Source: Octopus sinensis (taxonomy: Eukaryota). From it: DNA of 64,000 nt. The notes under the pieces are model-generated. The model made no database searches and was not told the origin of the DNA. It saw only the letters and a program-made list of their open reading frames with translations. Location of the stretch: the NCBI RefSeq assembly GCF_006345805.1, contig NC_043025.1, positions 3,534,001 through 3,598,000 on the forward strand, in the 5' to 3' direction. Shown in pieces: positions 12,001 to 38,672 of the stretch (the stretch's first letter is position 1; every line of letters starts with the position of its first letter). The translations under genes and the position numbers were made by a program.

Positions 12001-13711
12001 AGATGAAGTATATAGGGTGGGACCATCTAATTGAAGAACGCTAGTATAATAATGGTAAAATGGAATTGTTTTTATATATTCAAGTTGTCAATTGTGAATT
12101 AAGATGTATATGAAATTAACAAAAATTTCAGGAGCTTTAATATGGTGAACAAACTTACAGCGAAACATTCAACATATAAATATAAAATTAAAAATAAACA
12201 TTATTTTGTGTAATTTAAGAATGATTTGCAAAGTTTTTTTTTTGCTTTATTGACTAACATAAAGGTAAGGTAAATTTGACTTCTGTTTGTAGCATGAAAA
12301 ATTACCACATATTAGAAAAGACCTTTTAAGTGATTCTTAAAGAGTCCTTCAATTTTAAAGTTACCTAATAGTTATGATGGGTAAGAGAACGAGCTGAATG
12401 GCACCACGAACCTTGACAGAAGCTACATCAGACCTACGAGATTTCGATTGATGCAGTGACCAGCGCTGTCGCCCGACCTAAATACCATCGAAAATTCATG
12501 GTAAAGGTGGGGTAGCGCTTTGAAAAGTATTAAGACAGAATTTTTTAAAAACAATTTTAGCCGAAAGTGGGAAAATATCTCCGCAACAGTGATAAATGAC
12601 CTGAACATCTCTATGTTTCGCAGATGCAAATCTGTATTAAGTAATTTTGGGTTCCCAAAATACTGACTCTGTGATTTTATTGGTTTTTAGGGATCTCAGG
12701 ATGAATTTTAAAAGCAAACAAATCATAAAATATGAAATGTTACATGTTGTCCTTAAGTTAAATGGTACTCTAAATTATGATAATTAAGATTTATTTTTAA
12801 TCTAAAATTAACATATTGATGTTACGCTGTAAAGCTGTATACCCTATTAAAGCTCATAAGAGTTTCTTTAATTAGATATACAAATTAATTCACAATTTAC
12901 AAGTTGATTATATATATATATATATATATATATAAAATGACATTTGAACATTAGTAAATTAGGGTTCTTAAGTTGGATGACCCCACTGCAATTGTTTGGA
13001 AAATGTGGATTTAGTGTCAAAAAGGAAAGAAGGATGTAGAAATAGAACGAAGGGAAACTGTTCTTCAGCTGCATATAGATGAGAGATTACTAAACAAGGA
13101 TTGAGTGACGAAGAACACTTTAGTTGTGGAGTGGTCAAATTAGAGGAAGCGTATAGATTCACACGCAGCCGGTTCTAAAGTGTGTTTCAGGATATTAGGA
13201 ATGAATTATGAGATAAAGTTTTGGAAAACGCAATTCAATGACTCAAACAATTGAAAAGAACATAGATATGTGACTGTATAAACGTATATGTCTGAATGTA
13301 TGTATATACGTATGTGAGTATGAATGTGTGTATGTATGTATGTAAGTTTGTGTGCACGTATGCATGTATGCATATCTGTATTTGTATGTGTACGAATGCA
13401 TGCATGCAGGTATATATATATGTGTATTCAAAGAAGTATGTGTGTAGGTGCGTGTGTATGCATGTATGTATGTGTGTATGCACGTATGGGTGAATGTGCG
13501 TATGTAGATATTTATGTATTTATGAGTGTATGTAGGTTTGTATATACGTTTGTGTCTGTATATACAATCATTTGTGTATGTATGTGTGTATGTATGCGTT
13601 TATGTATGTGGATATGTATGTATGTGGATATGTATGTGTGTATGTATGTGAGTATGTATATGTGTATGTATATGAGTATGTGTGTACGTACTTATGTATG
13701 TATGTATGTAT

Positions 13712-14215
13712 GTGCGAGGGTGCGTCAAAAAGTAATGCCATTTTGTTTAGGACAGGTATAATTACCAACACAGGAACATGTATCATACATCAAAATGAAT
13801 CTTGGCCCCAGTGGATTACATCCCTACTCTTTAATATAGTTACCGTTCCTCTCAAAATCAATGTTCCTTCTTCGAATGAGAGTATGTATTCCTGCCCTGT
13901 AAAATTCTGTTGAATGTTCTTTGAGCCACTTCTTCACCACATTTCTTACTTCCTCGTCACTGGTATAATGTTTGCCTCTCAAACCCTCTTTTGTTGCGCC
14001 GAAGAGATGATAGTCTGAGGTGCTAAATCTGGTGAGGGTGGAGGTAATGAAGAAATGGCTCAAAGAACATTCAACCGAATTTTATGGGGCTGGGATACAT
14101 GCAGTCATTCGAAGGTGGAACATTGCTTTTGAGAAAAACGGCAACTATGTTGTAGAGTAGGGATGTGATCCACTGAGGACCACTTCCATTTTGATGTATG
14201 ATACATGTTCATGGA
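13712..14215. mobile_element. Foldback mariner derivative (two inverted 3' ends)
   Basis: CGAGGG terminus; ~165 bp inverted arms; loop encodes a TSDYHLFG..KEGLRGK remnant. Related copies at 15092-15485, 37015-37512 and 58750-59252. Confidence 0.8.
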
Positions 14216-14269
14216 CGGCCATCATGTCTGTCTGTCTGTATGTCTGTCTGTATGTATGTATGTCGCTCT

Positions 14270-34900: not shown

Positions 34901-36030
34901 CATGCATCAACCTGCCCCTGGTAAGCAGTATAGTGTACCAAATATCTATGTGAATGGTAAACGACTTGATGTAGTCGATCAGTTTGTCTACCTGGGAAGC
35001 ACTATTAATAGATATGGCAATGTGGATGATGAAAATTCCATATAGAATTAGGAAAGCAAGTGAAGCTTTCGGAAGGCTAGAAAAGCGCCTCTGGAGTCGG
35101 CGAGACATATGCAGAAAGACAAAGATAAAGGTGTACAAGGCATGTGTGCTTCCTTCTCTTCTCTATGCCTGAGAGACGTGGGTCGCATATCGATACCACC
35201 TGAAACAACTGGAACGTTTCCATCAGTTGTGCCTCAGACGGATGTATGGCATTAAGTGGAATGACCGCATCAGTGATCTTGAAATACTCGAAGGCTCTCG
35301 GTGTGAAGAAATAGAAGATCTTGTGTTAAAGCAAAGGCTCAGATGGAGTGGTCATCTGGTCAGAATGAAGGATTCAAGGATTCCAAAACAATTCTTTTAT
35401 GGAGAGTAAGCTAAAGGAGAACGACCTCCACATAAACCAAAAAAGAGGTATACGGACTTGCTGAAGGCTTCCTTAAGAGATACTTGCATCTCTCCTGACA
35501 CATGGGAAGGCATAGCTATTGATCGAAGCAGATGGAGAAGGATTGTGCATGAGGGGACAGCCACTTTTGAGAAATCTCGAGTTGCACATGAGAAAGTAAG
35601 GAGAGATGTCAGGAAGGGCATCGCTGTTACACTTCCAGAAGGGAAGGGTCTTCCTTCGATTCTGACATGCAATATTTATACAAGACCCTGCCTCAGTAAA
35701 GCTGGGTTCATGACTCATCTTCGTAGTCATAAAACGAGACAGATGAGTGACAACCTGGCCACTGGTGGTGGGGTAATACACCATACTAATCATATCTGTC
35801 GGGCATGTGGAAGAGAGTGTAATTCGGCAGGAGGGCTTAAACGACATGCAAAGGTACATGAAGCCCAGTTACAACTACAGCCGACTATTTCCAGAAAAGG
35901 TTTTAGCTGCCAATTTTGTACAAGACATTGTAGATCTTTGGCTGGGCTAAAAAGTCACATTCGATCACAGCATCAGTAACGGTTAAGCTTCATGCAATAG
36001 CCATACTCGATAACAAGGGGGCAGCCATAA
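31910..36030 (+). mobile_element. RTE-clade LINE, near full length, defective, with C-terminal triple C2H2 fingers
   Basis: IGCWNVRTL, DIVALSETRL, LGDFNARVG, SDHRLV, YRGVSLL, ESQSGFR, GVKQGD.L.P.LF, LYADD, YLGS; 3' end gggggcagccat followed by microsatellite. Confidence 0.93.
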
Positions 36031-38672
36031 AAGTAAGTACTGTATGTATGTATGTATGTACACATGCATGCATGTATATGCTTGTATGCAGCTAAGTATG
36101 TGTGTAGGTTTGTAATGTATGCATACATTTATATATGTATGTGTGTATGTATGTATATATATATGCTCGCATGCATGCATGTATGTTCATATATATGTAT
36201 GTGTGCCTCTACGTGTGTATGTACGTACGTTTGCATGCATGTATGTGCGTGTACTTATGTATGTAGTCATGTAAGTTTGTATGTGTGTATATGTAGAAAT
36301 GCATGTGTGTATGTATATACGTATGTATGCATACTTGCATGTAGGTGCCTATGTATGTATGTATGCTGGTATGTATGCATCTATGAGCGTATGTATGTGT
36401 GTATGTACACACACATGTATGTACATTTATATGTGTGTACGTATGGATGTATATATGAATGATTGTGTTTATGCATGCATGTTTAAATGTATGTAACTAT
36501 ATATCTGCGTACGCATGTCTGTTGTATGTATTTATGTATGTATGCAAGTGAGTATGTACATATGTGTTTATATGTGTGTGTCTTTATGAATGTATGTGCG
36601 TATATATGTATGTATGTATATATGTACGTGCGTATGTATGTATGTATCTTTGTATGCAAGCGTATATATATGTACGTATAAATGGTCATATATATGTATG
36701 TGTGTACATATCTGTCTATATATGTGTATATGTAAGCATGCAATTTTGTATATATATATATATGTATGTCTGTGTGTATGTATATATGTATGTATACGTG
36801 CATATATGTATGTGCCCTTATATGTATATATATGTATTTATATGCGTATATATACCTGTATTTGTGTATGTATGAGTGTATGTTTCTATATGCGTGTGTG
36901 TGTGTATGTATGGATGTGTGCTTGTATGTGTGTATATGTATGTGTGTATATATGTTTGTATGTGTAAGTGTATTTATGTGGGTATGTGTGTACGTACTTA
37001 CGTATGAATGTACGTACGAGGGTGCGTCGAAAAGTAATGCCATTTTGTTTAGGAAAGGTATAATTACCAACACAGGAACATGTATCATACATCAAGATAA
37101 ATCTTGGCCCCAGTGGATCACATCCCTACTCTTTAATATAGTTACCGTTTCTCTCAAAAGCAATGTTCCTCCTTCGAATGAGAGCATGTATTCCTGCCCT
37201 GTAAAATTCTGCTGAATGTTCTTTGAGCCACTTCTTCACCACATTTCTTACTTCCTCGTCACTGGTATAATGTTTGCCTCTCAAACCCTCTTTTGTTGCG
37301 CCGAAGAGATTATAGTCTGAGGTGCTAAATCTGGTGAGGTTGGAGGTATTGAAGAAATGGCTCAAAGAACAGTCAGCATAATTTTACAGGGCTGGGATAC
37401 ATGCAGTCATTCGAAGGTGGAACATTGCTTTTGAGAGAAACGGCAACTATGTTGTGGAGTAGGGATGTGATCCACTGAAAACCAGTTTCATTTTGATGTA
37501 TGATACATGTTCATGGACGGCCATCATGTATGTCTGTCTGTCTGCATGTATGTACGTATATATGTATGTATGTATGTATGTATGTATGTATGTATGTAAA
37601 TATGTGTGTATGTATGTATGTATGTATGTATGTATGTATGTATGTATGTATGTATGTATGTATGTATGTAGGTATTTATGTATGTAAATATATTTGTACG
37701 TATGTATTAATGTATTTATGCATGTATGCATTATTGAATGTATATATGAATGTATGTATTTTTGAATGTATTTATGGATGTAAGAATGTATGCATGTATG
37801 AATATCTGTACATGCACACATACATAGGTACATACGTACATATACATATACATAAAAACATAATTACACACATAGATATATATACACATTTATATACACA
37901 TACATGCATACATAAGTACATTCACATGTACATACATACACACATGTATGTATGTGTGTATGTATGTCTGTATGTATGTGAGTGTGTATGTATGTATGTA
38001 TATATGTTTTTATATATGTATGTATGTATGTATGAGTGTCTATGCATGTATCTGTGTATGTGTGTATTTGAAAAGTGGATTTGCCCGTTAAGGAACATTT
38101 GAAATGGAGTCCAGCAGATTGGACGAATGTGTTGTGGTCGGACGAATCAAAGTTCAACTTGTTCGGCAGAGATGTCAGGAAGTATTTAAGAAGGCGTATA
38201 GGCGAAGAATTCCAGCCTTCAATTAGGCACTCTGGCGGAAGTGTGATGATGTAAGGGTGAATGTCTGGAAAAGACGTCGGTTCTATAATATTAATGGATA
38301 GTAAGTCCTATCTAGAAATATTGAATAATACTATGCCTCCATACGCCCGAAAGCATTTGGACTTTCCAGCATGACAACCACCCGAATGTCACCTCGTACC
38401 AAGTCAGAAATTACATCATACCTAAGAGATTTCGGTTGATATAGTGACCAGCGTCGTCGCCCGAGCTGGAACCCATCCAAAATCCTTGAGAATGGTTGGG
38501 TAGAGCTGTGAAAAGTATTAAGACAAAGAATAAGGAGAATTTTTTTAAAACATTATTAGCCGAAAGTGGGAAAAAATCTTCGCAACAGTGATAAATGATC
38601 AGAACATTTCTATGTTTCGCAGATGCAAAGTTCCCAAAATACTGACTCTGTGATTTTATTGCTTTTTAGGGA

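Follow-up and report, generated by a model that had tools for sequence, protein, structure and literature searches.

A probable low-copy tandem and inverted segmental duplication of transposable-element and microsatellite DNA in a 64-kb window of the Octopus sinensis genome

Arrangement and composition of the duplicated block

The window analysed here is a stretch of 64,000 nucleotides of the Octopus sinensis genome (assembly GCF_006345805.1, contig NC_043025.1, positions 3,534,001 to 3,598,000), with 38 % G+C and one gap of 100 N at 38673-38772. It contains two regions built largely from transposable elements (TEs) and microsatellites, the left block (12394-38672, +) and the right arm (46886-63810, -), which a stringent self-BLAST showed to be homologous in opposite orientation. 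A first-pass annotation of the same DNA had reported a recurring Tc1-end landmark and an inverted, circularly permuted arm of about 17 kb, and both observations were reproduced. The landmark is an exact 32-mer, GTTCCCAAAATACTGACTCTGTGATTTTATTG, located at 12651-12682 (+), 38630-38661 (+) and 56882-56913 (-), with an offset of 25,979 bp between the two direct copies and zero matches in 100 shuffles. The right arm is one complete inverted unit of 16,925 bp in the self-BLAST chain, exactly one period, and the order of its modules is a circular permutation of that in the left block.

In the direction of the left block, the chain is colinear from 15740-17572 (aligned to 56657-54711 of the right arm) over 18111-18673 (53769-53184), 20439-21849 (53180-51783), 24692-26355 (51785-50146) and 26350-27960 (50045-48410) to 30429-31913 (48386-46886). 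It then jumps to the other end of the right arm and continues with 31915-32476 (63810-63252), 32781-35347 (63256-60706), 35409-37613 (60703-58650) and 37943-38672 (57620-56872). A MAFFT alignment of nine non-microsatellite blocks comprised 11,124 positions with 462 differences, corresponding to 95.8 % identity, and Kimura two-parameter distances of 0.02-0.077 per block. This similarity is far beyond chance. With such an identity and a chain of 16.9 kb, the copies lie above the length of at least 1 kb and the identity of at least 90 % by which segmental duplications are recognized.

About 2.6 copies of the unit are visible in the window, of which about 1.5 are direct copies with a single head-to-tail junction. 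The unit length of 26 kb given in the first-pass annotation was too large. The offset of the direct repeat exceeds the 16.9 kb of the right copy because the left block contains four segments that the right arm lacks (1.77, 2.84, 2.47 and 0.30 kb) and a local duplication of approximately 2.5 kb.

TE sequence with protein support makes up about 55 % of the length of the unit and microsatellite (approximately 3.2 kb of degenerate (TATG)n) 19 %, and 5 % belongs to elements resembling short interspersed nuclear elements (SINEs) or to Y, a short repeat of about 200-250 bp. The remaining 21 %, namely the segments V, X and U and two short pieces, is unassigned, and the description of the unit as consisting only of TE debris therefore went too far. 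The clade names RTE, Tx1, CR1 and R4 used here for long interspersed nuclear elements (LINEs) are labels from the first-pass annotation, whose module names found support in part. For all three LINEs of the unit, APE and reverse transcriptase (RT) domains were supported by Pfam. The Tx1-like LINE also has a zf-RVT domain and a CCHC gag-like open reading frame (ORF) compatible with its label, and the RTE-like LINE has three C-terminal C2H2 fingers. Support for the CR1 label is indirect, as the best relatives of this element are mostly avian RT proteins with no more than 40 % identity; a search of the protein collection with its ORF found no octopus near-copy. Using phmmer against the PDB, the Tc1 fragment of 620 bp matched the catalytic domain of Sleeping Beauty (SB100X), and the folded-back mariner fragment matched the C-terminus of SETMAR and Mos1. 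The mariner fold-back (13774-14210, 37076-37512 and 58755-59190) consists of two inverted copies of the transposase C-terminus and is approximately 75 % self-complementary. For V, which had been called R4-like, there was no protein-domain signal at all.

The Pfam scans were conducted on concatenated ORFs joined by X linkers. No domain was found in ORFs of at least 35 amino acids (aa) of V, X, U, the Tc1 module and the mariner module, and in ORFs of at least 40 aa of the left-only segments 21850-24691 and 27961-30428 no further domain was found beyond TE proteins. Searches for Rfam families and tRNAs gave no match in the unit. In agreement with the first-pass annotation, neither the Pfam ORF scans nor tblastn searches with members of the adjacent gene family revealed a host exon in it. 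Eight ORFs of the window had zero exact matches in a collection of 15 billion proteins. The SINE-like family is about 350 bp long and has four copies in the window (32028-32322, 45243-45592, 54419-54688 and 63400-63692), which are 91-94 % identical to each other and match no tRNA or Rfam family; two of them are located in microsatellites.

The left block, as delimited by self-BLAST and the landmark 32-mer, consists of a truncated copy and a longer copy arranged head-to-tail and stops at the end of its contig, at the gap. Its outer edge (12394-12909, +) comprises a Tc1 end fragment, A0, and U. Here, the identity to the right arm is about 78 % in 12396-12537 and about 95 % from 12537 onward. The edge is followed by a rearranged patch (12909-15716, +) with the local duplication, in which a microsatellite precedes the modules B1 (13774-14446, +; mariner fold-back and Y), A1 (14453-15092, +; Tc1 fragment) and B2 (15090-15716, +; second mariner fold-back). 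Block C (15740-18000, +), a degenerate (TATG)n microsatellite detected with TRF, aligns to 56657-54061. The Tx1-like LINE (18111-21849, -) contains zf-RVT at 18134-18433, RT at 19007-19372, APE at 20039-20548 and the CCHC gag-like region at 20596-21521. Next to it lies the second left-only segment (21850-24691, +), a fragment of another LINE family with zf-RVT at 22934-23179. Between the Tx1-like and the CR1-like LINE lies X (24692-25313, +), which aligns to 51785-51270 and has no Pfam match. The CR1-like LINE (25314-27960, +) ends in an (AACT)n tail. It is followed by the third left-only segment (27961-30428) with microsatellites and unassigned sequence, in place of which the right arm has 23 bp, and by V (30429-31913, +), which has a length of 1.5 kb and is 96.2 % identical to 48386-46886. 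Beyond the head-to-tail junction (31913-31915) are a truncated Y (31915-31992, +), a 3'-truncated SINE-like element (32028-32322, +) and the RTE-like LINE (32371-35976, +). The end of the block (36041-38672, +) comprises a microsatellite, the mariner fold-back B3 (37076-37565, +), another microsatellite and the Tc1 fragment A2 (37969-38600, +), followed by 72 bp from the start of U. Because the contig stops within U, it is plausible that U continues into the gap, as had been predicted.

The right arm begins with V (46886-48410, -) and the CR1-like LINE (48410-51330, -), followed by X and a Tx1-like remnant (51785-53770). Its copy of microsatellite C contains a SINE-like element (54419-54688). 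Then come U (56657-56963), Tc1 (56963-57583) and a microsatellite, Y (58483-58736), the mariner fold-back (58755-59190) and a further microsatellite, and finally the RTE-like LINE (60142-63385), a SINE-like element (63400-63692) and Y from 63733. A copy of V had been predicted just past the right arm. Instead, the readable 190 bp of flank (63811-64000, +) are the remainder of Y (to approximately 63911) and an (ACAT)n microsatellite (63912-64000), and 63733-63987 matches three other copies of Y at 58483-58736, 14223-14430 and 15499-15700. The spacer between the gap and the right arm (38773-46885, 8.1 kb) is not homologous to the unit. It includes an exon with an LRRNT cysteine cluster, a SINE-like copy (45243-45592) and an (ACAT)n microsatellite (46549-46896), which abuts the right arm on its V side.

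Junction, shared lesions and later decay

The two copies of the left block meet at 31913/31915, where the end of V and about 10 bp of its adjoining microsatellite are fused to the middle of Y. At this join there are 0-2 bp of microhomology or filler and no real homology. In the right arm, 16.9 kb separate these two points, and there is no break at either of them. There, V borders the 350 bp (ACAT)n microsatellite at 46549-46896, and Y is intact past 63810. On this basis, the junction in the left block is regarded as derived. The point 31914 is thus where two units of a tandem duplication meet head-to-tail, and the end points of this duplication coincide with the two ends of the right arm. As this junction joins the two ends of the unit, the right arm appears circularly permuted relative to the left block, in which a truncated copy beginning inside Tc1 at 12394 is followed by the junction and by a second copy running into the gap.

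The mosaic was copied as a block that was, at least in part, dead before the copying. This is shown by alignments across TE-TE boundaries, by a common truncation of a SINE-like element and by a common stop codon. Alignments with about 96 % identity run uninterrupted over the boundaries between X and the 5' end of the CR1-like LINE, between Y, the SINE-like element and the 5' end of the RTE-like LINE, between Tc1 and U, and between the 3' end of the RTE-like LINE and the microsatellite, which supports the amplification of the mosaic with its internal junctions that had been proposed earlier. In both arms, the SINE-like element that neighbours the RTE-like LINE breaks off at the identical base, whereas the two other copies in the window run on for about 50 bp. 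The RTE-like LINE has an in-frame TAG at 34148-34150 in the left block and at 61896-61898 in the right arm, in the context PED*RDTV. The earlier claim that copying took place after the TEs had decayed holds only in part. The CR1-like LINE retains an open frame of 542 aa in the right arm, and each of its frameshifts and stops occurs in one arm only. The CR1-like copy thus appears to have been less decayed at the time of copying. Overall, what was copied is not a single mobile element but several unrelated elements with common junctions, the same order and the same truncation points, and self-BLAST found no terminal repeats at the ends of the unit.

Other lesions are private to one arm. The right arm lacks the sequence corresponding to 18674-20438, so that its Tx1-like LINE is missing the RT and a portion of the APE, and a 3-bp filler, GTA, is present at the join. 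It also lacks 32477-32780, which corresponds to positions 3 to about 66 of the APE profile, the N-terminus, in the RTE-like LINE. Because these missing segments encode LINE coding sequence, at least these two of the four left-only segments represent deletions in the right arm. No target-site duplications were found at any of the four. The SINE-like copy at 54419-54688 is private to the right arm. Among the repeated modules, pairwise identities are 91.6-93.1 % for the three Tc1 copies and 93.9-94.7 % for the mariner copies B1, B3 and B4. These nearly equal distances suggest that the tandem and the inverted copying happened at nearly the same time or belonged to a single complex event.

The explanation we favour, with a probability of about 0.78, is that non-coding TE and microsatellite DNA underwent an ordinary low-copy segmental duplication with both tandem and inverted copies. 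A pre-existing patchwork of three LINEs, a Tc1 fragment, a folded mariner, SINE-like elements and (TATG)n microsatellites would have been copied as a block. The right arm would keep the ancestral flanks, with the microsatellite on the V side and the intact Y on the RTE side, and the left block would have come to hold, in the opposite orientation, at least about 1.5 head-to-tail copies. The join at 31914 would be non-homologous, of the end-joining or template-switch type, and if both steps belonged to one event, this may have been a complex replication-based rearrangement. Afterwards, the copies would have decayed independently and accumulated about 4 % substitutions. The right arm would have lost the two pieces of LINE coding sequence and gained the private SINE-like copy, the left block would have acquired its local duplication of 2.5 kb, and two further large indels would have arisen. 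No gene content or function was detectable in the duplicated block, and we infer that it has no function.

Several points weigh against this explanation. The inverted orientation of the arms rests on the scaffold join over the 100-N gap and could prove to be direct. The copies were counted within the 64-kb window, and a larger array may exist. At the left edge, the low identity of the outer 140 bp to the other copies and the departure of 12394-15716 from the unit order, with its modules scrambled, point to additional events. Divergence is also uneven along the arms, with 2.0 % in the 5' part of the Tx1-like LINE versus about 7 % in Tc1 plus U and in Y plus the SINE-like element (chi-square p = 2e-8), and a neutral model with a single age fails to describe this without gene conversion or rate differences. 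The most similar block (20439-21849 / 51783-53180, 1.4 kb) is 98.0 % identical compared to 95.8 % overall (binomial p = 1e-5), which could result from gene conversion between the two arms at this site. Finally, exons shorter than about 35 aa, families without models and non-coding functional elements in the unassigned 21 % would escape the scans.

Neighbouring exons and alternative explanations

On both sides, the left block is accompanied by same-strand exons of a family of adhesion G protein-coupled receptors (GPCRs) with leucine-rich repeats (LRRs). A 7tm_2 exon at 147-620 (-) encodes transmembrane segments (TM) 5 to 7 of a secretin/adhesion-type GPCR (Pfam E = 2e-13) and is 86 % identical at the protein level and 93.8 % at the DNA level to an O. 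sinensis gene described as 'adhesion GPCR G2-like'. In that gene, the TM3-4 exon lies about 4 kb upstream of the seven-transmembrane (7TM) exon. No TM3-4 exon was found anywhere in the window, for which reason the 7TM exon may be a gene fragment. Alignments with the related O. sinensis locus (L001) comprise the 7TM exon and TE matches at the family level, including the LINE family of the left-only segment 21850-24691, and those with a locus of O. bimaculoides (L002) comprise a paralogous exon match of 74 %; neither locus shows colinear non-coding sequence. In the spacer, a first coding exon at 43633-43832 (-) has a polypyrimidine tract, a CAG acceptor, an ATG, a signal peptide, the LRRNT cysteine cluster and a GTAAGT donor. 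A word-indexed homologue search with its 67 aa returned no match, and an exhaustive HMMER search found N-terminal relatives with 43-52 % identity. One of these relatives (P0038) has 543 aa with a signal peptide, LRRs and the 7TM region of the same GPCR family.

These exons give some weight to the view that the left block lies within a long intron between them, in an LRR-adhesion-GPCR gene that was amplified, with the duplication as a by-product of the amplification of the gene family, but this remains rather unlikely. Both are minus-strand exons and follow each other in the expected order, the first has canonical splice signals, and its relatives include P0038 with LRRs and a 7TM region like that family. 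However, tblastn and motif scans found no LRR, GAIN or TM1-4 exons between the LRRNT exon and the 7TM exon, and the possible fragment nature of the latter also speaks against this view. Moreover, there is no second copy of either exon anywhere in the window, so that neither was visibly amplified with the unit. For the corresponding suggestion of the first-pass annotation, the flanking exons provide some context. It is possible that the left block belongs to a duplicating gene cluster, either within an intron or between genes.

The first-pass annotation had also proposed a macrosatellite. In this case, the window would show the edges of a true higher-order tandem array, or of two mirrored ones, with many units in the gap and past 64000. 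The head-to-tail junction at 31914 agrees with this, as does the stop of the left contig 72 bp into U, where the next copy would carry on. Furthermore, (ACAT)n-type microsatellites are present on both sides of the right arm, and unequal exchange between them could build an array. On the other hand, only about 2.6 copies are visible, and the right arm is a single copy with the non-unit spacer on its inner side. The remainder of Y, not V, directly follows 63810, and at 12394, on its outer side, the left block adjoins unrelated TE debris. The best match of the microsatellite at 63912-64000 is the sequence before V (46786-46878, 85 %), but other microsatellites of the window score equally. An array of this kind is therefore unlikely.

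An assembly or scaffolding artefact, in the form of side-by-side haplotigs, a misplaced or mis-oriented second contig or a chimeric join at 31914, was judged very unlikely. The arms are located on different contigs with the 100-N gap in between, and long microsatellites, at which assemblers tend to break, are abundant. In contrast, the arms differ by 4.2 % substitutions over 11.1 kb, at least five indels of kb or sub-kb scale and the private SINE-like copy, and allelic differences are usually far smaller than this. A duplication of haplotigs was rejected because this divergence is too high and the circular permutation would not be explained. The direct repeat and the junction at 31914 are found within one contig, and a wrong orientation of the second contig would change the inverted copy into a direct one while the duplication itself would remain.

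A functional TE-silencing locus, such as a PIWI-interacting RNA (piRNA) cluster or a source of hairpin RNA with inverted arms of 17 kb and a loop of 8 kb, would be a highly improbable reading. What fits is the anatomy, a dense mosaic of pieces of several TE families with inverted copies that could pair if co-transcribed. The arm identity of 95.8 %, the long microsatellites and the indels would result in an imperfect duplex, and dense TE mosaics are common in repeat-rich genomes without being piRNA clusters. A more elaborate version, which we consider equally far-fetched, is that the arms are the edges of two mirrored tandem arrays within an LRR-adhesion-GPCR cluster, transcribed into hairpin or dual-strand small-RNA precursors against LINE, Tc1 and mariner elements. 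If true, this would be a TE-trap locus of cephalopods made by segmental duplication. A giant or composite transposon was rejected, as there are no terminal repeats or target-site duplications at 46886/63810 or 12394 and all TE genes are fragments or interrupted, and so was a simple fold-back palindrome, as the arms are permuted and not mirror-symmetric unless at least 10 kb of the unit lies in the gap.

Further repeats are located outside the duplicated block. A Penelope-like retroelement at 2884-5234 (-) has an RT ORF of 509 aa followed by a GIY-YIG endonuclease ORF of 289 aa. Two short inverted or palindromic repeats are unrelated to the unit; the first (6700-6862 / 7067-7230, 87 % identity) flanks an (ATAC)n microsatellite, and the second lies at 42710-42980 (83 % identity). 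In the left flank, a mariner transposase HTH_48 domain at 9409-9669 (+, E = 1e-17) belongs to a distinct mariner remnant. Close to the left edge of the repeat, but outside it, an ORF at 11660-11983 (+) resembles, by eye, the N-terminal part of a LINE reverse transcriptase, and the left flank would at this position also be TE debris.

Comparison with known systems

The duplicated block shares single features with several known structures. As in piRNA clusters and TE graveyards, pieces of many TE families are densely interspersed in it, but piRNA clusters are defined by the production of small RNAs. Ampliconic or sex-chromosome palindromes likewise have inverted arms of more than 10 kb with a short spacer. 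Their arms, however, are more than 99.9 % identical due to gene conversion and contain genes, while the octopus arms are 95.8 % identical overall, with a best block of 98.0 %, and are geneless and permuted. Macrosatellites such as D4Z4 and DXZ4 also have kb-scale units and head-to-tail junctions. In contrast to their many near-identical units in one orientation, which imply three or more units head-to-tail, the window contains one junction with about 1.5 direct copies, the copies differ by 4 % and by large indels, and one copy is inverted.

The DUP-TRP/INV-DUP (duplication, inverted triplication) rearrangements known from human genomic disorders, for which fork stalling and template switching or microhomology-mediated break-induced replication (FoSTeS/MMBIR) is the model, are similar in having direct and inverted extra copies. 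The nearly homology-free junction at 31914 and the similar ages of the copies also correspond to them. A model in which a single event of this type created the octopus block is a possibility. The difference is that these rearrangements are defined in fresh events with a known parent, while the octopus copies are approximately 4 % diverged, one boundary lies in the gap and the edge at 12394 is unclear.

On its own, the locus is of little importance. It adds a further case to a type of structure that is well known. A literature search on segmental duplications in octopus gave nothing specific. Nevertheless, the block is a clean and datable example of the reshuffling of non-coding DNA in the repeat-rich genomes of cephalopods. 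As it adjoins exons of the expanded LRR-adhesion-GPCR family, it may record the duplication activity that expands this family. There are also practical consequences. The region should be flagged for a check of the assembly and scaffolding, namely of the gap and the orientation, and the common TE-TE junctions could be misread by repeat annotation pipelines as a new composite repeat family.

The closest correspondence is with the segmental duplications of animals. Compared to these, the octopus block contains no detectable gene and has unusually many long degenerate microsatellites, which are located at or near several breakpoints. Nevertheless, there is no essential difference, as segmental duplications are also blocks of at least 1 kb with at least 90 % identity and a low copy number, in which older TEs were passively copied and whose neighbouring tandem and inverted copies decay independently.

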